The notes below the pieces were generated by a model. The model saw only the letters and a list, made by a program, of their open reading frames with translations. It was not told the origin of the DNA and ran no database searches. A stretch of 12,717 nucleotides of DNA from Chlorokybus atmophyticus. Its lineage: Eukaryota; Plantae; Mesostigma and Chlorokybus algae. This document shows, in pieces, positions 2,922-12,717 of this stretch. Position 1 is the first letter of the stretch. Each line of letters starts with the position of its first letter. The stretch covers positions 110,087-122,803 of the forward strand of contig RHPI01001168.1 in NCBI GenBank assembly GCA_009103225.1. Direction: 5' to 3'. The position numbers were made by a program, and so were the translations under genes.

Positions 2922-3444
2922 NNNNNNNNNNNNNNNNNNNNNNNNNNNNNNNNNNNNNNNNNNNNNNNNNNNNNNNNNNNNNNNNNNNNNNNNNNNNNNN
3001 NNNNNNNNNNNNNNNNNNNNNNNNNNNNNNNNNNNNNNNNNNNNNNNNNNNNNNNNNNNNNNNNNNNNNNNNNNNNNNNNNNNNNNNNNNNNNNNNNNNN
3101 NNNNNNNNNNNNNNNNNNNNNNNNNNNNNNNNNNNNNNNNNNNNNNNNNNNNNNNNNNNNNNNNNNNNNNNNNNNNNNNNNNNNNNNNNNNNNNNNNNNN
3201 NNNNNNNNNNNNNNNNNNNNNNNNNNNNNNNNNNNNNNNNNNNNNNNNNNNNNNNNNNNNNNNNNNNNNNNNNNNNNNNNNNNNNNNNNNNNNNNNNNNN
3301 NNNNNNNNNNNNNNNNNNNNNNNNNNNNNNNNNNNNNNNNNNNNNNNNNNNNNNNNNNNNNNNNNNNNNNNNNNNNNNNNNNNNNNNNNNNNNNNNNNNN
3401 NNNNNNNNNNNNNNNNNNNNNNNNNNNNNNNNNNNNNNNNNNNN
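2922..3444. other. Assembly gap (523 N)
   Basis: Run of N. Confidence 1.
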
Positions 3445-3644
3445 TGGATATGCTTGTGTGAAGTGTATGAGCGTGTGCCACACCTTGCGAACGGACTTAG
3501 CCTCATCTCCCCGTGCATCACATGCCAATTGCAAGTATAGAAGCCCGTGCTTGAGTCTAGGTTGGCTAAGACACGCGCTTGTTACTTGCGCTCAACTCAT
3601 TGGCATAAAGGTGTGCGGGTGTTTGTGGTTGTGGTGGACGTGGA

Positions 3645-6314
3645 ATGCCCGTGGAAACAAGGTCAGGAGCTGGTCTGAAGGAGCTTGAAGTCCCCTTGAA
3701 GGAGAGAGAAGAGTTGCCCGAGAAGGAGGTGCCTACTTCCCCGAGTGAAGGAGACTACGAGGACGAGCCAGCCGGTGACAAGGAAGACCACGAGGAGGTT
3801 GAAGAGGTTGAAGAGGAGGAGCCAGATCTAATGGACACCTTGTTGAAGACGGAGATGGAGGGTGCGCGCACGCGTTTCAGCGGTCGGCCCAACACATTGG
3901 AGCTACAAGACTTCAAGGATAGGTTTGAGTGTCGCATGATCAGCTGGTCGGCACGTGATAGGTCATGGAATGAGCACAAAGCATTTAAGATGATGCCCGA
4001 ATTCTTGGAGGATGAAGCTTTGGGCACGTGGAGGGAGTTCAAGAGGAAGTTGGAGGCACGAGAAGAGGTGTGTAGAGCTGAACATGGAGCTGAGTTTGAG
4101 AAGGAGTGGGCGAAGGTGCAGCCCATGAAGGAGTTCATGATGGTGTTGACGTCGACGTATCCACAATCGACGCCGGCAAAGATGATGGAGCTGATGTATT
4201 TCAAGCGCAAGGATGGTGAGACCCCACGCATGATGTACACGAGGATGGTGAAGTTGTTGGAGGACACGGAGCATGAGGTTGTGTCTAACAAGATGGCCGC
4301 GGTGTTGTACTTGCGTGCATTGGAGGATGGCTTGCGGGAGGCGGTGCAGACCGTGTTGCGAGGAGCGCATCAAGGCGCAAGCTACACGCTTCGTGATGTC
4401 TTCGTTGCAGCCGAGAATGCTCAATGGCAGCAAGAGTATGAGAAGAGCATTGGTTCGATGGCAGAGGGCATGGCGACGCAGCTGTCGGGAGCTACCAAGC
4501 GCACCGATACTGGTCGGCGCGATGGAGGGCAAGCTACAGTCATTAAGTCAGCTCCGGTGAGGAGTGTGATGGCTGCAAACGGTGTTCCTATGGATGCACG
4601 GCATGAGGAGCAGCAAACGGGAGTGTGTTGGAGGTGTGGAGAGGTCGGACACATCGCAAAGTATTGTCCGAAGAGGCAAGGCCTCGTGTGTTCATATTGT
4701 GGGAAGATGGGCCATGATGACAATGCGTGTTGGAGCAAGCATCCGCACTTGCGCGCGGAGGTGCTGAGCGGCAAGACGGTGACCAAGCAAGCACATTCAG
4801 CTCAGGCGGGAAGCTCACAAAGCCATGCGGAGCTGGCGCGTGCAAGCGAGGTGTCCGCGCTCGTTGCCGAAGTGGCCGAGTTGAAGGCGGCGCTAGCGGG
4901 GCTGCGCACGCAGCCGGAACGCAAGCAAAAGGGTGTCCGACAGGAGAAGGATGATGATGATGGAGGTGCGTACGCGTACTTGGCGTATAGCGCGGCGTGG
5001 TGCAGCCCGATGACGGCTACGGCAGCTACGGGGACTGCGCGCGCTGCACCAGCACCTACGGCGGCGGTATCGCCCTACATGCGAGGCAAGGGGGGCCGCG
5101 TCGCAACCTCGGAGGTTTGTAAAGCTGCTGGAGGTCATGAAGAACTGTTTGCACCAGCTAATGCGCGATCACGCGCGGTATCGGCACCGTTGACGGCGAC
5201 GGCGGGAGGCTATGCGCCTGCGCCAGCCATGGAGGTGTCAGCGACGTCGGCGTTGTCAATGCCTTTGGTGAGGAGGGTCATGAGTGTGGAGCAGCATGAT
5301 GGTATGTGTATTGAAGTGAAGAACGATGTGGATGAGGGCAAGATGCAGTCCATGAAGGGTTTGGCATGTTTGTTAGAGACGGCAAGTGCGCAAGTCAGCC
5401 CGGCATGTGCGCGCGTCATGAAGGTGCCAACGGCGGCGCGTGCGGATGCAAGTGCAGTCCATGAGCTGGCGGGAACCCTTCTCCATCAGCCCATGTTGAC
5501 ACTGAAGGATGTCGGATGTACTTTGGAGCGTTTGGAGTGCGTGTTGGGGCCGATGTTGAAGCCCGCGACAGCTGACGCAGCTACGCAAGTCACTTTGGAT
5601 TGCGAGGCAGATGTGACGAGTGAGGAGGAGTTTAGGGCAGTCATCTATGCAGGAAAGAAGCTTCATGAAGTCACGGATAATGAGCAGGAGCTGGAGGTGG
5701 ATGTGCCTATCGTGGAGTTAGCAAACGGCATGCACACGGAGGTGATGGAAGAGCCGGTGCAGCTGGACTCCAAGTCGGACTTGTCGGCGGCGTTGTCGAG
5801 ACCGGCGGAGAGGCTTGATGTTATGGCGACGGTGGCAACGGTGGACAACAAGCATGGTCATGTGCAGCTGAACGGGTACACACCGGAGCGCGTGCTCGTG
5901 GATACATGTGCGGAGCCAGTGATACTTGGAGCGAGAGCGGCGGCGCGCATGGGATTGCAGCCGAAAGATTGGGGGCCATGTCCGTGGCATCTCAAGACTG
6001 CTGGAGGAGGGATGGAGGCCGTGTTTGCGGTGACATTAGAGCCCGTGCAGATCCAATTGACTGCACATGGTGGAGGGCGAACCACTCTTGGTGTTCATTG
6101 CCTTATCACCGAGGGGGGGAGCTATGATGTGCTATTGGGGCAGGAGTTCTTGTATCCAGTGGGAGGAGGAGTGGACAACTGGTTGGAGCAGGGCTTTTTC
6201 AGACCGGGATGGGAGCATGGTGATGGTGAGAAGGCATTCTTTCCGTTACGCGTGAGAGAGGTTGAGGAGGCTCGAAGCGAGGGGGTGGACGGATGCGATG
6301 GTGCGTGTGGATGA
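3645..6314 (+). CDS. gag: Ty3/Gypsy-like Gag-protease polyprotein (capsid-like region, two CCHC zinc knuckles, retropepsin-type aspartic protease), with no RT/RH/INT
   Basis: 889-aa intronless ORF. Capsid-like helices (ELQDFKDRFE…W…KAFKMMPEFLEDEALGTWREF), knuckles CWRCGEVGHIAKYC (4626-4667) and CSYCGKMGHDDNAC (4689-4730), protease motifs RVLVDTCAE (D at 5901) and DVLLGQEFL. Confidence 0.88.
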   Translation: MPVETRSGAGLKELEVPLKEREELPEKEVPTSPSEGDYEDEPAGDKEDHEEVEEVEEEEPDLMDTLLKTEMEGARTRFSGRPNTLELQDFKDRFECRMISWSARDRSWNEHKAFKMMPEFLEDEALGTWREFKRKLEAREEVCRAEHGAEFEKEWAKVQPMKEFMMVLTSTYPQSTPAKMMELMYFKRKDGETPRMMYTRMVKLLEDTEHEVVSNKMAAVLYLRALEDGLREAVQTVLRGAHQGASYTLRDVFVAAENAQWQQEYEKSIGSMAEGMATQLSGATKRTDTGRRDGGQATVIKSAPVRSVMAANGVPMDARHEEQQTGVCWRCGEVGHIAKYCPKRQGLVCSYCGKMGHDDNACWSKHPHLRAEVLSGKTVTKQAHSAQAGSSQSHAELARASEVSALVAEVAELKAALAGLRTQPERKQKGVRQEKDDDDGGAYAYLAYSAAWCSPMTATAATGTARAAPAPTAAVSPYMRGKGGRVATSEVCKAAGGHEELFAPANARSRAVSAPLTATAGGYAPAPAMEVSATSALSMPLVRRVMSVEQHDGMCIEVKNDVDEGKMQSMKGLACLLETASAQVSPACARVMKVPTAARADASAVHELAGTLLHQPMLTLKDVGCTLERLECVLGPMLKPATADAATQVTLDCEADVTSEEEFRAVIYAGKKLHEVTDNEQELEVDVPIVELANGMHTEVMEEPVQLDSKSDLSAALSRPAERLDVMATVATVDNKHGHVQLNGYTPERVLVDTCAEPVILGARAAARMGLQPKDWGPCPWHLKTAGGGMEAVFAVTLEPVQIQLTAHGGGRTTLGVHCLITEGGSYDVLLGQEFLYPVGGGVDNWLEQGFFRPGWEHGDGEKAFFPLRVREVEEARSEGVDGCDGACG

Positions 6315-6481: not shown

Positions 6482-6591
6482 TGTGAAGGTGGAAAAGGTG
6501 CAGCATGATTAGGCCATGACGAGCTGGTGGACGACATCCTCGCGCAACGATAGGATTTGGCACGACAGGGCTGACTCGTAGTGCAAAGGAG

Positions 6592-7494
6592 TTGATCACC
6601 CTACAGTACGCCCAAGACGCGCTGCATCACCGCATGCGGCATGCCTCGAGGTGGGTGACGAAAGTTTGCAATAAGTGGGAGCAAACGCGGAGAATGCGGT
6701 CTAAACAGACCTCTGGGGATTGGCCGTGGTTGGAACCCATACACGATATGGCCATCCGTAGTACATTGTTGCCCCTCGCCACCCTCGATATGATGGTGTT
6801 GTTGCTGCCGCAGCACCCCGGCAATGTGCAAGAGCTAACTGCGGAGCAGAACTTCGACCTGCTGCAGCAGATGTACCTGTCGATGTCGACTAATGCGGGT
6901 CGAGATGTGTGCCACCGCCTGAGCAAACATACTGGGTGGCAAGTAAAACCATTCGAGCTGTACTTGGCATGCTTTGGCTGGCAGTGGCTGTATGTCATAC
7001 GGCACGTCGAGCTGATTCTGTGGAAGCTCGAAGAAAATGACGATGCGGGGGAGTACACGAGTGACGACAGCCATGTCGAGGGCCTGGATGAACGCATGCT
7101 GGACGAGACCACCAAGACCAGCAGGTGGTGTATGGCGGCAGATGGGCGTCAGGTGATCGAGCAGGCAGTGGAGCGTTATGCTGCGCCATTTAGATGGGAG
7201 TCGCTACGCCTGCGACGCGATAACAGAGTTTGGTGGCAGAGGCAGCTTGCACACCCGCGTGCACCATGTGTGCTGATTTGTCGCATTGAAGAGCCACCCC
7301 CCCCAGCGGATGGGGAGACGCCCTGTTGCAAGAAAGCGATGTGCCATGTCTGCATCATAGCACATCAGAAGACTGTGGCAAATAAATCAAAGAATCTACA
7401 AGCGTGTCCATTCTGCAAGCAACCTCACCCGTTTTGGTCGCCACGCCTGATGCAAGACGCCAACGTGTCGGCGGTGATTTGGCCCCCGCCTTGA
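6592..7494 (+). CDS. RING-finger (C4C4-like variant) protein segment; probably a 3' exon whose true start is near 6513
   Basis: C-terminal CVLIC-x14-CCKKAMCHVC-x18-CPFC (7267-7416) has RING spacing with the usual His replaced. The ORF has no ATG at its 5' end (TTG at 6592), and coding-like sequence continues upstream through a TAG and a frameshift. Confidence 0.65.
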   Translation: MITLQYAQDALHHRMRHASRWVTKVCNKWEQTRRMRSKQTSGDWPWLEPIHDMAIRSTLLPLATLDMMVLLLPQHPGNVQELTAEQNFDLLQQMYLSMSTNAGRDVCHRLSKHTGWQVKPFELYLACFGWQWLYVIRHVELILWKLEENDDAGEYTSDDSHVEGLDERMLDETTKTSRWCMAADGRQVIEQAVERYAAPFRWESLRLRRDNRVWWQRQLAHPRAPCVLICRIEEPPPPADGETPCCKKAMCHVCIIAHQKTVANKSKNLQACPFCKQPHPFWSPRLMQDANVSAVIWPPP

Positions 7495-7782: not shown

Positions 7783-7863
7783 AGTACCATTAACAGATGG
7801 AGTACCATTCATGTTGATGCAGTACCATGCATGGTACTGCGCAGTACCATGCATGGTACTGCA
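7783..7863. repeat. Palindrome array 2 (AGTACCAT/ATGGTACT units)
   Basis: AGTACCAT at 7783, 7801, 7821 and 7843; ATGGTACT at 7831 and 7853. The 22-bp perfect palindrome gcagtaccatgcatggtactgc occurs twice in tandem (7819-7840, 7841-7862), giving a 46-bp perfect palindrome at 7818-7863. Confidence 0.92.
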
Positions 7864-7906
7864 ATAGCGTATAAGGTACAGTCGTGCTTCACTTGAAGTT
7901 TGACCC

Positions 7907-7998: not shown

Positions 7999-9712
7999 AT
8001 GATGTCGGCGGCAGCAGTTGAATCACCCTCACCTAGGAGACCATGCTTGGTGTGCCCACAATGCAATGCGTACGTATGTGCCAATGGCCGTAGGCAGCAA
8101 ATGCGAGCACACTTGACCGAATGCCAGCGAGTGCAGACAGTGTGCCACGGTTTTAGTGCTGCTTGCTGGCATCACACCACACACAATGTCGACGAGTTTG
8201 GCTGCCGCCTCGGCCAAGTGCTGCGCAAGGAACCCGAGTTTTTCCATTGCGTGCAGTGCGTGTGCGAATCGTGCTCGCGCTCATGCTTCGAGTGGCGAGG
8301 GGAACCCATGCGCTTCTTCACATGGACAACACCGGGACATGTGGTTAGTGGACAGGTGGTGGATGCTGTGGAGGTAATCCACAAGAGTGGACCGCGACGT
8401 ATCACTGCATGTTATGTTGGGCGTATGCTTATTTCATGCATGTTGAAGCTGTTGTCGCATTCAGAGCAGTCTTGCACGGTGTGGGCGTGGGCAGTTCCAT
8501 CCCCTGGCCGCTGTAGAGGAGGCAGACCATCGACCGTTGGACAGCGCACTGCATCGGCTGCGGAACGCAGTTAAGTTGGGATGCGAGCAGCTGATCGGTG
8601 TGAGTGTCATGGTGCATTGGCCGCTGGATGGGGAATGGTATGCGGGCGTTGTGGAATCATTCAAGCAAGCGTCAGGTCAGCATCGCTTCGTGGCGTGCGA
8701 GATTGAGGACGCATCATATATGCATGGTGCAATGGAAAATGTCTTTGCAAGGCAGCACCGTATAGTATTCGATGACGGTGATCGACCACAAACCATCAAC
8801 TTAAAAGGGCACAACGTATTCGTGTACACATCAATTGACGGGGCACGCCATGTTCTGCGCGCCGGAGGGGAGAACGTCAGTCGCAAAGTAAGCCCGGACG
8901 GCATCATTGTTAGTCCTTGGCCAGCACCACGGCCAGCCTTGACCACATACACGCCATTTGACAACAAGCTGGGACGCACACGCAGACCAAGGGCACTCGA
9001 CCTATTCTGCGGCGGTGGCGGTGCCAGTGTCGATCTATACCACGCAGGCTTTGACGTGACCGGGATGGACATAAGTCCCTCCTCTGAGTACCCGCTGCCC
9101 TTCACACACCGCGATGTATGCACCCTGAGTGCAGGAGAGCTGAGCGAGTACGAGCTCATCTGGGCCAGTCCACCATGCCAGGCCTATTCAGGTGCTATCC
9201 CGGCACCTCAACGGGCGGCACATGGCACATCCTGGAGACACCAGGATATGATACCGCTCGTCCGACGTCTGCTGCTTGCAAGCCAGGTCAAGTTTGTGAT
9301 TGAGAATGTGCCAGGAGCAGCTTCCTCATTCAGACCCAATCTGTCCCTTTGTGGCACGATGTTTGGCCTATCAACTTTCCGATACCGTCTGTTTGAGACA
9401 CAGCCAGTGGTAGCTACCCCACCAGCACGCTGCTCGCACGCGGGCAAGGCAGTTGGACTGCTATCGCCGCACCTGTCCGCTAGCGCGAAGAAGACAATCG
9501 TGACATCAAACGCGCCACAGCAGATGTACCCGGTCTATGGCCTTCCAAGCACCAGGGGCGGCATTGCTGCGTGGCAAACAGCGCTGGGAGTGCCATGGAT
9601 GACCTCGGCCGTTTTCATAGCGAATGCAGTTCCTCCCGCAATGGCGGAGTGCATAGGGCGTCTCATGCTTGAAACAATGGATATGCGCTGTGACTACCCT
9701 CCTGTGTCATAG
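7999..9712 (+). CDS. Zn finger-Tudor-C5 cytosine DNA methyltransferase fusion. Exons 7999-8373 and 8465-9712, with an internal 75-nt intron-like insert at 8676-8750
   Basis: Intron 8374-8464 (GTAATC..TTCAG, phase 0) joins a Cys-rich exon (CPQC-x15-HLTEC; CVQCVCESC) to the 8537-9712 frame. Tudor: LIGVSVMVHWPLDGEWYAGVVESFKQASG/QHRIVFDDGDRPQTINL (8591-8803). C5-MTase motifs in order: I LDLFCGGGG (8996), II GMD, IV ASPPCQAYS (Cys at 9176), VI VIENVPG (9302), VIII RYRLFET, X IANAVPP. Confidence 0.9.
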
Positions 9713-9928
9713 AACTATGAGGCTTGTGTGGTGCACTGTATTGATGCTTAATGCCACACGGCGGACTGATTGTTGAATGTTGCATGGATCATTCGATTGT
9801 AGTGACAGTTGTGCAGTGACAGCTGCCCGGTATTGTACACGTCCACATGCAAAAGTCTTAGCATACGATTAGCAATGCCTAAGTGACTGATATGCTCCAA
9901 ACTCAGAGTAGTGAGACAAGTACATGTG

Positions 9929-12717
9929 TCACGTGGAAGTGCAGTGAATGTTCACCCAATACTTGCCCTCTTGTACACGGGCGCTGTCCTTGTCAAACAT
10001 GGGGAGCAGCTGGACAATGCCTTTTACTTGCTCCAGAGTCACGACATCGAGATGTGGACCGCCTCGACGCTTTTCCCATTCCAGAGCGATGCACTTTGTG
10101 TCGCTCGTCACATCCAGCTTCGTGTACCAGCGGACAAACACGACCTCATTCCACACGCGCTCGCCGCTACCACCTCACACCACCACGCGCAGAAAAAGGA
10201 GTGCCTGAGCCCACCACGTCACGTTCACACCGTCCTCATCACCTTCCAACTCAAGTGTAGAGAACCAAGGCCGCCCATGGAACATCCCAGTTGCGCGCGC
10301 CATGCTGACTCCTGATGTCATGTACACCGCTGCGCCTCCGTTCACCACGCGAACAGCACGCCACCCGTCGGCCAACTCCAGTTGTTCCCTCCTCAACCAG
10401 CTGTCCAGGGTGGCAGGCAGCTTGTCGGCAAATGGAGTCTTCAAGGCGACTTGGCGGCTACGCGCAGATCCGCTCCAGTACGGGCTGGACTCCCTCCTTG
10501 TCAGCACATCCATCCGTAGCAACTTGTCCGTCTTCTCCATGACATTACAGCACTGCTGCCGCGCCTGCGCCATGACCGAGCGCATCTCGGGATCCACGAC
10601 CATGCCATCCTCTCTCACATATTCCGCACAGCTCCATGCCTTCAGGATACGTGCCTGGTAGTCCCGGTTGTTGCCACCACGCGCCCACCGTTTGATATTT
10701 TGGGCGTGCGTCTGCTCCATGCGGTTGGCGCTGAACCAATCTGGGTGTCCACTGCTGACAATTGCCGGCCCAAAATGAGTGAGCTGATGCATCTTCTCGA
10801 TCTTCCAACCTGACTTCTGTGCAGAATATGACGACAGTAGCGGATGCAACACTGCAGCTTTGAAGGCAGCCAGCTCGTTGTCGGCTGTGGTCAGGGTCTC
10901 TCTTGTGTGTTCATGCGCCTTCAGCAACTTCTTGTTCCACTGGGCAAGCGATGCGGCAGCAATGGTGAAGAAATCGTTGCCCTCACTGTCGAGCAGCAAA
11001 CCGTCTGCGAGGACCGGCAGCAGCTGCAGCACCGCCACTTTCTCCACCACCTGAAAGGAGTGGTCGGACAGGAAGAAATCTACTGTGCTTGTGGGTGCCT
11101 TGAAGTGCGAAACCCGCAGAGTCGCCTTGCATGCATTCAGCCTGTGCACATCTGCTCGTGAGCACGTGTTGTTGGCTTTTGTGTTCAACACAAAAGCAAC
11201 ACCAAAGACGTGCCTGGCCTGCAGAATCTGTCTCGTGGATGGACGCATTCGTTCCTTCGCGGCGTCGTACACAGCAGCAAGCAGGTGGTCAATGATGCCT
11301 CCCAGCACATGCATTGCGTCAGGGGCAAGACGAGAGTAGCAGTCAGCTCCCGGCACCCGCGACTGTCGCCAACCCCACAGTGCATTCTGTTGCCAAACCA
11401 CATTGCCTGGTTTCACGGAAAGCCATTCATCCTCACGAATGCCGGTAATTTGACCATTACCTCCTCGACATGCATGGAGTGCTGCTCTTTGAAAGCCTTG
11501 GCTGTCTGGCGTGCATTCCTAACACCGCTATGCAGGTCCGCCCGCAGCTGACGTATTGCTGGTGTGTAGAAGGCCTCGGTTCTCAATTCCCGGTCCTCAT
11601 CCATCTCCAACAGATCTGATTTGGTGACGAGACAAACATCGCAAGGATGTCGTGTTTGGTTGCCCGACACAGTGCGTGCGAGTGTGGCAGTCTCCTACAA
11701 CACGACAAACTCAGATGTTCTACTGACAACATCCTCCATGCACTGTTTGCTGGCGGGCTGCATCCGGTTACAACCATTCATGCCCACTACCTGCAAATCG
11801 CTGATGTAGTTGGCAAGCGCGGGAAACACACGACGCTCAATGCCATTCGGGTCGATGAGCTGCAGACCTTCCAAACTCGCCCGTTTCACATCCCCTAACA
11901 CTACATTCAAAGCGTCATGAAAAATCTCACGTTTCCGAATGGAGAACGATTCCTTGCCCTGCGCCCAGGTGGGATGCCCGGCCACTGCGTGAACCACCGG
12001 CAGAAGCGCTATCATAACAACCCCCATGTTGCTAGCATACATGTCCCAACTGTAGTTGGCAAGCGATGCCATCAGAGGGTAGCCAGAGCGCTTGCCCGCG
12101 CTGTCCAGCGTGGTCTTGTCACTGTATAGAATGGCAGGCGCCAAGTAGGACGCTTCCCCCACCTCTCTCCTCAAATCTACATCCACATCCTTCCACCAAT
12201 CGCCCGCGGAAGGATGGCCAAAGCTGTGCTCGTCACCAGTGTACTGGAGATTGAAGCCATTGGCGGCATGTGGATTGCCATACAACCGTGCGAGCCATAC
12301 ATGCTCCGACCAAGAGCATTACTTACTATGCTGGCCTCAGAATAGATACTGCATCGATACTGCATTAGGTACTGCATTTCACAAACCTTGGCCGGCATAT
12401 ATGTGACGCAGATGTCCTGATCCTCAGGGTCTCCAGGCTTGCGCAGGTCAGCCGTCACGTAGTTCTGATACGGCAGCACACTCGCATGTGCATATGTGAC
12501 ATGGCTCTGATGGTTGAAGCACATGCACCGCACACCGTGAACACACCTCAGACTGAGAGAAAGCAATCGTGGTCCGGAGGTAGCTGGCCGCATGCACACC
12601 GGTCTCCCACTGGAGCTCTTCCGTCAGGAAGTGTGCATTTCGGATGCACTTGATGATCCGCCCCATGTCGGAGGCCGACAGGCCTTGGCCGTTGTTGCAC
12701 TGCACGAATGCCACTGC
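9929..12717 (-). pseudogene. Plavaka-family transposase (PF18759-like), spliced, one premature TGA, 5' end outside the window. Exons >12717-12547, 12464-12387, about 12303-11791, 11694-11461, 11386-11214, 11141-9929
   Basis: Joined exons give the Plavaka motif series in order: LYGNP…GDWW, PAILYSDKTTL…GYPLMASLAN, ALLP, FHDAL, RRVFPALANYISDLQ-ETA…HPCDVCLV, LAPDAMH, KMHQLTHF…AI…GHPDWFSANRMEQTH, FHGRPWF, VFVRWY…VQLLP…YWVN. Splice sites are GT-AG except 11213-11142 (GC-AG) and an uncertain acceptor near 12301-12304. TGA at 10177-10175 is in frame with the C-terminal 82 codons ending at 9929. Confidence 0.88.

Follow-up and report, generated by a model that had tools for sequence, protein, structure and literature searches.

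Can a cut-and-paste DNA transposon carry a cytosine methyltransferase that is guided by histone marks? The question is raised by a 12,717-nt stretch of contig RHPI01001168.1 from the alga Chlorokybus atmophyticus (hereafter the window; 12.7 kb of eukaryotic draft sequence with 55.5% GC). Here, a plus-strand open reading frame (ORF) that encodes a Tudor-like domain followed by a C5 cytosine DNA methyltransferase (MTase) converges on a minus-strand gene for a Plavaka-type transposase. We favor the reading that a large DNA transposon of the Plavaka type (EnSpm/CACTA-related) carries the Tudor-MTase gene as an accessory, or passenger, gene; our analysis of the locus leaves this nearly evenly balanced, with a slight lean to doubt. 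The fuller proposal, a Plavaka transposon with its own histone-mark-guided writer of 5-methylcytosine (5mC), in which a giant-virus-derived C5 MTase is fused to a Tudor domain of the H3K4me1 type, is put forward tentatively, as possible but somewhat doubtful.

The Tudor-MTase frame (8447–9712, plus strand; stop codon at 9710–9712) runs for 422 codons without a stop. Its residues 146–384 (8972–9688) form a compact C5 DNA MTase domain with an unusually short target-recognition region. Conservation was read from alignments of 22 and 119 family members, and in both the window protein keeps all invariant and nearly all near-invariant residues. D155, F157, C158, G159, G161 and G162 of motif I (FxGxG, S-adenosylmethionine binding) stand in invariant or near-invariant columns. 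Motif IV, which contains the Pro-Cys nucleophile (S211-P212-P213-C214), and motif VI (E256-N257-V258) are invariant or nearly so, while R282, R284 and E287 of motif VIII (RxR) and P366-P367 of motif X are conserved. An initial annotation of this DNA, made from its letters and a list of ORFs, had described the C5-MTase motifs as complete, and with motifs I, IV, VI, VIII and X intact we agree.

The Pfam profile PF00145 scores 21.2 bits against this domain, just below its gathering cut-off of 22, and the match spans motifs I–VI only. This shortfall is offset by three other comparisons. The profile phrog_363 ('DNA methyltransferase') reaches 87.8 bits, the family profile matches M.HaeIII, M.HhaI and DNMT2 in the PDB, and a Foldseek search with the AlphaFold2 (AF2) model of the domain (pLDDT >90) gives a probability of 1.00 to DNMT3B/3A, DNMT1 and M.HaeIII. 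These observations support an apparently catalytically complete C5 DNA MTase, with DNA methylation as its predicted activity.

Upstream of the catalytic domain, residues 13–98 (8573–8830) likely form a Tudor-like reader. The only significant match of the N-terminal ~100 residues to a solved structure is the Tudor domain of Arabidopsis RDM15/PDS5C (PDB 7DE9; phmmer E 2.1e-5, 28 bits, residues 13–52). This domain, solved in complex with H3K4me1, is a reader of that mark with a cage of W616, Y623 and Y641 plus D643/D645, and RDM15/PDS5C is linked to RNA-directed DNA methylation (PMC8184781). Two of the three cage aromatics align, W28 with W616 and Y35 with Y623. The segment in register shows Ala, Glu and Glu at the third-cage and acidic positions; an acidic D-x-D pair occurs in F78-D-D80-G-D82, which fits the Y641-x-D643-x-D645 pattern with Phe for Tyr, but lies 25 residues further downstream. 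The window domain differs from its Arabidopsis counterpart by 25 extra residues between cage positions two and three, which represent either an insertion or a second copy of the third strand, and it also lacks the PDS5 context.

Two similar segments starting with Q-H-R ('QHRFV...' and 'QHRIV...') lie 25 residues apart in this region (8681–8782, plus strand), and only the second carries the F-D-D-G-D cage motif. The in-register 'QHRFV...' looks like a degenerate duplicate of the canonical 'QHRIV...', as would result from an in-frame partial duplication of the third strand. We also considered an in-frame intron as the source of the extra residues and rejected it, since the good GT..AG pairs at this place are out of phase.

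In the AF2 model with the MTase domain, the beta-strands predicted for the Tudor part reach a pLDDT of 50–70, and the insert falls below 35 and is disordered; a single-sequence model of the Tudor region reached 42.6, too poor for a fold search. The Tudor part has no Pfam match, and used alone as query against the large protein collection it gave no match at that database size. Because the call comes from the single 7DE9 match and a moderate AF2 model, with Pfam silent, we accept the Tudor-like reader as likely only, and of the H3K4me1-reader type as judged by sequence; histone binding is putative. The Tudor domain with cage residues proposed in the initial annotation is supported by the 7DE9 similarity and the position of W28 and Y35, with the caveat that the candidate third cage residue is displaced.

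The first ATG of the Tudor-MTase frame (8609) falls within the first Tudor strand, and the 7DE9 alignment starts 12 residues before it, so that a complete protein needs an upstream exon. The ORF list offers a candidate in a plus-strand ORF at 7999–8574, which starts with ATG-ATG and overlaps the Tudor-MTase frame in a different reading frame. As an exon it would end at one of several in-phase GT sites at ~8343–8373, and several in-phase GT..AG combinations could join it to the Tudor-MTase frame; from these sites we infer a splice, in agreement, in principle, with the spliced gene of the initial annotation. The ORF is rich in Cys and His (13 Cys and 7 His within the first 125 residues) and has no match in Pfam, PHROG, NCBIfam or the PDB. 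It is probably the Cys-rich first exon of the gene, and the 'Zn finger' that had been placed here is a guess from this Cys and His content, with no matching family or structure.

It could be argued that the gene is a decaying relic, its Tudor domain disrupted by the 25-residue insertion and its frame left without an ATG of its own, so that the protein is either not made or does not bind histones. The position of the first ATG within the Tudor domain, the displacement of the third cage residue by an insert that AF2 models as disordered, and the missing Pfam Tudor match would all agree with decay. Nevertheless, 422 stop-free codons at 55% GC are very unlikely without recent constraint (estimate ~e^-20), all family-invariant catalytic residues are kept, and the upstream ORF supplies an ATG together with several in-phase GT..AG options. 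We consider the relic explanation unlikely.

The combination of domains appears to have no counterpart among the relatives of the enzyme. An exhaustive search of 1.84 billion representative proteins returned 3,752 MTase homologues at E<=1e-3 (3,317 in a word-indexed search; best E 8e-59), and in the best 150 of the 3,752 matches the catalytic part aligned and the Tudor part in none. Relatives with N-terminal extensions were also scanned; none had a Tudor domain, and some had an MBD insert, an IS1595-type transposase domain or a second MTase copy. A metagenome scan with the Tudor-MTase ORF gave distant MTase matches only. Full-text literature searches found neither a Plavaka element with a C5 methyltransferase nor a Tudor-fused orphan DNA methyltransferase (DNMT), which agrees with the initial annotation, whose author knew of no described Tudor-fused C5-MTase in a Plavaka element. 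On the basis of these best matches, extended relatives and literature searches, the fusion of a Tudor domain to a viral-type C5 MTase seems, as far as we have seen, to be new for this MTase family.

The viral character of the catalytic domain had been overlooked in the initial annotation. The nearest kin reach identities of at most about 51%, and there was no close relative of the window MTase among 15 billion proteins. In a neighbor-joining tree of 119 sequences, the window protein fell into a five-member clade with P0002, P0003, P0124 and P0125, whose members have a common C-terminal D-Y-P-P tail. This clade is nested in an eleven-member group together with P0005, encoded 0.5 kb from a major capsid gene of nucleocytoplasmic large DNA viruses, and P0009, whose 245-kb contig also carries genes for the RNA polymerase large subunit and a family-B DNA polymerase (PolB). 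Two relatives that were not among the 119 sequences also come from giant-virus-like contigs: P0123 adjoins genes for topoisomerase II and ribonucleotide reductase (RNR), and P0008 shares its contig with ATG8, RNR and PhoH genes. Among predicted viral structures (BFVD), the best match is the C5 methylase of Pithovirus LCPAC201 (E 1.6e-16, 31% identity), which leads by seven orders of magnitude. Phages commonly carry members of the wider family: a relative is present on at least 356 IMG/VR contigs, and one member (P0001) adjoins a terminase gene on a phage-like contig.

The window enzyme thus resembles the short C5 MTases of giant viruses and phages (Pithovirus LCPAC201, PHROG 363) in its catalytic domain and in all shared motifs, with 31–51% identity to relatives on giant-virus-like contigs. 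It differs from them in several respects. The viral relatives have no Tudor domain, and several contain a long target-recognition insert, sometimes an MBD, which the window protein does not have; moreover, the window gene lies in eukaryotic DNA rich in transposable elements and probably contains an intron. Virus-derived 'orphan' DNMTs are reported to be widespread in eukaryotes and are described as mostly without companion domains (PMC12344493). In these terms, the window MTase is by its sequence an orphan DNMT of viral type.

The family also shows other domain arrangements. Three members (P0001, P0121 and P0122; phage-like contig) contain two tandem copies of the short C5-MTase domain per polypeptide. 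In P0003 (L004:2028-3050) and P0124 (L013:447-1616), which are the closest relatives of the window MTase and lie on dense virus-like contigs, a methyl-CpG-binding domain (MBD) is inserted in the target-recognition region of the enzyme; judged by sequence, this would place a reader of 5mC within a 5mC writer. Finally, in P0257 (414 aa) an MTase relative follows an IS1595/ISXO2-like DDE transposase domain in the same protein (Pfam 25.4 bits, below the cut-off), a hint that links between this MTase family and transposases exist elsewhere too.

On the other side of the locus, the transposase gene occupies 9932–12717 of the minus strand, with its 5' part beyond the end of the window. The Pfam Plavaka profile PF18759 matches at 11788–12243 (profile positions 76–228 of 325) with 79.5 bits against a cut-off of 26.3, which confirms the transposase named in the initial annotation. 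Plavaka elements are present across Archaeplastida (PMC13519894). The frame consists of six long open segments separated by five interruptions, namely three frame changes and two in-frame stops. Since all five can be bridged by canonical GT..AG pairs, the interruptions may be introns or damage. A homologue search with a 413-residue transposase ORF gave no match, full-length Plavaka proteins being beyond the length limits of that search, and two transposase segments had no match on the viral contigs.

The two genes converge, as had been noticed before, with a spacer (9713–9931) in which we found no repeats or family matches. The gap between stops of 216 nt originally given holds if the last open transposase segment is counted; it is about twice as long if the frame ends at an earlier stop. 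In either case, the tail-to-tail spacing of a few hundred nucleotides favors cargo, because an element end and a 3' untranslated region would hardly fit between the genes. The MTase gene is also xenologous and lineage-restricted, and the failure to find a close relative among 15 billion proteins fits a lineage-restricted passenger rather than a conserved host gene.

Precedent points in the same direction. Plavaka elements of fungi carry TET/JBP genes (PMC12730594), and those of red algae carry N6-methylase-SET and ParB-like 2-oxoglutarate (2OG) oxygenase genes as well as inverted-repeat arrays (bioRxiv 10.1101/2025.02.11.637652). The palindromic arrays upstream of the Tudor-MTase gene recall the latter. 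An array of palindromic GTACCATGCATGGTAC units lies at 7799–7880, 120–200 nt upstream of the ATG at 7999, and a second cluster of the motif is found 6.8 kb to the left, at 909–1092. The palindromic 16-mer GTACCATNCATGGTAC occurs at six sites in these two clusters (940–1068 and 7802–7859), giving 11 strand-matches where 0.28 would be expected by chance. Possibly both clusters are protein-binding arrays that belonged to a single element before an insertion split it.

The giant-virus and phage type of the MTase suggests an alternative, in which the host acquired the gene from a virus and a transposon had no part in it. The gene could be a host gene or a remnant of an endogenised giant virus that later gained its Tudor domain, next to which a Plavaka element inserted by chance in a repeat-rich region. 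That the nearest MTase relatives are giant-virus genes speaks for this explanation, as does the known giant-virus route of orphan DNMTs into eukaryotes (PMC12344493). Against it stand the tail-to-tail spacing of a few hundred nucleotides and the repeated reports of DNA-modifying passenger genes in Plavaka elements. Furthermore, the window ORFs scanned contained no other giant-virus hallmark gene, and the window MTase has a reader domain where orphan DNMTs generally go without companions. Chance adjacency is a substantial possibility all the same, although we regard it as rather doubtful.

Several observations favor chance adjacency or otherwise weigh against the reading as cargo. In none of 97 loci with MTase relatives did we see a Plavaka gene, a Tudor domain or the N-terminal ORF; 95 of these loci (1.36 Mb) were checked by tblastn, the last two by the listed Pfam families of their called genes only. 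The MTase frame is intact, whereas the transposase frame is interrupted five times, and if these interruptions are damage, the two genes have been under different constraints. No pair of long terminal repeats (LTRs) or terminal inverted repeats (TIRs), LTR-like direct repeats, target-site duplications (TSDs) or second copies were seen in the window (self-BLAST for LTRs and TIRs), and no element termini are visible. Plavaka termini in fungi consist of motifs of 3–5 nt (5'-TGT..ACA or 5'-CATCA..TGATG) with TSDs of 2–3 bp (PMC12730594), too short to place an end from a single copy, and one end of the element must lie beyond the window. The Tudor call itself comes from one 28-bit PDB match; the third cage residue is displaced, and the model of this part has low confidence. 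The CpG observed/expected ratio of 0.73–0.94 is without the strong footprint of heavy CpG methylation, and a retroelement fragment and an assembly gap are part of the mosaic make-up of the region.

The retroelement fragment is a plus-strand ORF at 3609–6311, which stays open for 901 codons, has a strong G-over-C skew and, by its family matches, encodes a gag-type CCHC zinc knuckle and a retroviral-type aspartic protease. Just upstream of it lies the assembly gap, a 522-nt run of N at 2923–3444. Along the plus strand the gag-protease ORF is followed by an open frame of 324 codons (6520–7491), the Cys/His-rich ORF and the Tudor-MTase frame. The 324-codon frame ends 0.5 kb upstream of the ORF at 7999 and has a Cys/His-rich, RING-like C-terminus. 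Its sole PDB similarity, to the RING of TRIM30, is non-significant (E 0.15), and it has no match in Pfam, PHROG or NCBIfam nor in scans of the viral contigs; it may be a further gene of the Tudor-MTase unit. The palindrome clusters described above flank the block formed by this frame and the gag-protease ORF. ORFs in 1–2922 had no match in Pfam, PHROG or NCBIfam, and Rfam and tRNA scans of the window were empty. Neither the gag-protease ORF nor any of ten window ORF variants had an exact match in the collection of 15 billion proteins.

With the gag-protease ORF, the 324-codon frame and the Tudor-MTase gene all on the plus strand, the MTase could also be part of a retroelement. There is precedent in SymbioLINE-Dnmt and SymbioDIRS-Dnmt3 of the dinoflagellate Symbiodinium and in a similar case in Klebsormidium (PMC5890265). 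Yet the ORFs scanned contained no domain of a reverse transcriptase, RNase H, integrase or tyrosine recombinase, LTR-like direct repeats were not seen in the window, and 1.7 kb with a separate ORF lie between the protease and the MTase gene. This origin is very improbable in our view, and the gag-protease ORF is probably a neighbor outside the Tudor-MTase/Plavaka unit.

In our preferred reading, the locus would encode a chromatin-guided C5 DNA MTase. A compact catalytic domain of giant-virus or phage ancestry would have been combined with a eukaryotic Tudor domain (RDM15/PDS5C/MSH6 type), and a Cys-rich first exon would probably precede both. The Tudor barrel would dock on the tail of histone H3 where this is methylated; the resemblance to RDM15 suggests H3K4me1, with the insertion leaving the specificity uncertain. 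Docking would hold the MTase, with its short target-recognition domain, on nearby DNA, where 5mC would be added de novo. The docking and writing logic would be that of DNMT3 with its PWWP domain, or of plant CMT with its chromodomain. The gene would most likely travel as a passenger of the Plavaka element whose transposase gene converges on it. One can speculate that the element gains by masking itself, by tuning its own silencing or by silencing competitors.

Both reader-coupled DNMTs and transposons with epigenetic cargo are established as concepts. The locus resembles the fungal PlavakaB elements with TET/JBP and the giant red-algal Plavaka elements with the passenger genes PAG1-3 in that a transposase stands beside a DNA-modifying enzyme fused to a chromatin-related module, with inverted-repeat arrays nearby. 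The enzymes are different: TET/JBP proteins are dioxygenases, PAG2 encodes an N6/N4 DNA methylase (PF01555) with a SET domain and PAG3 a ParB-like part with a 2OG oxygenase (bioRxiv 10.1101/2025.02.11.637652), whereas the window enzyme is a C5 MTase with a Tudor reader, in a gene whose place in the element is inferred. PF01555, SET and 2OG domains were not found in the window ORFs scanned.

DNMT3 (PWWP/ADD), plant CMT (chromodomain), 'ChloroDNMT' (PWWP) and the bdelloid N4CMT share with the window protein the fusion of a reader of methylated histone lysine, from the Royal family, to a DNA MTase; N4CMT, a bacterial N4-methylcytosine methylase with a chromodomain, and similar cases are cited in PMC12344493. 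The catalytic domains of DNMT3B/3A are also the best structural matches of the window MTase in the PDB. In contrast to these enzymes, it belongs to a viral orphan lineage, not to DNMT1/3/5, has a Tudor reader like that of RDM15/PDS5C and is possibly transposon-borne. Finally, the DNMT-bearing retrotransposons resemble our proposal in that a mobile element brings its own C5 DNMT and might regulate itself through methylation. Their DNMT lies inside coding regions, with no Tudor domain mentioned (PMC5890265), while in the window it is a separate, convergent gene and the candidate carrier is a cut-and-paste element.

Eukaryotic DNA MTases become useful to chromatin when they gain readers, such as PWWP/ADD in DNMT3 and the chromodomain in CMT, and the locus would be a snapshot of a foreign, viral-type MTase being wired into the reading of histone marks. 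If the two genes are adjacent by chance, it would still present a new domain architecture for an orphan DNMT, which would be of narrower interest. If the gene is truly cargo, a 5mC writer would be new beside the TET/JBP proteins, N6-methylase-SET proteins and 2OG oxygenases that Plavaka elements carry. It would be the first reported reader-coupled C5 DNMT as cargo of a DNA transposon, linking giant viruses, transposons and the epigenetic machinery of the host. Such an element could choose the chromatin states at which cytosines become methylated, and with it one could ask in a concrete system whether mobile elements also impose cytosine methylation instead of merely undergoing it.

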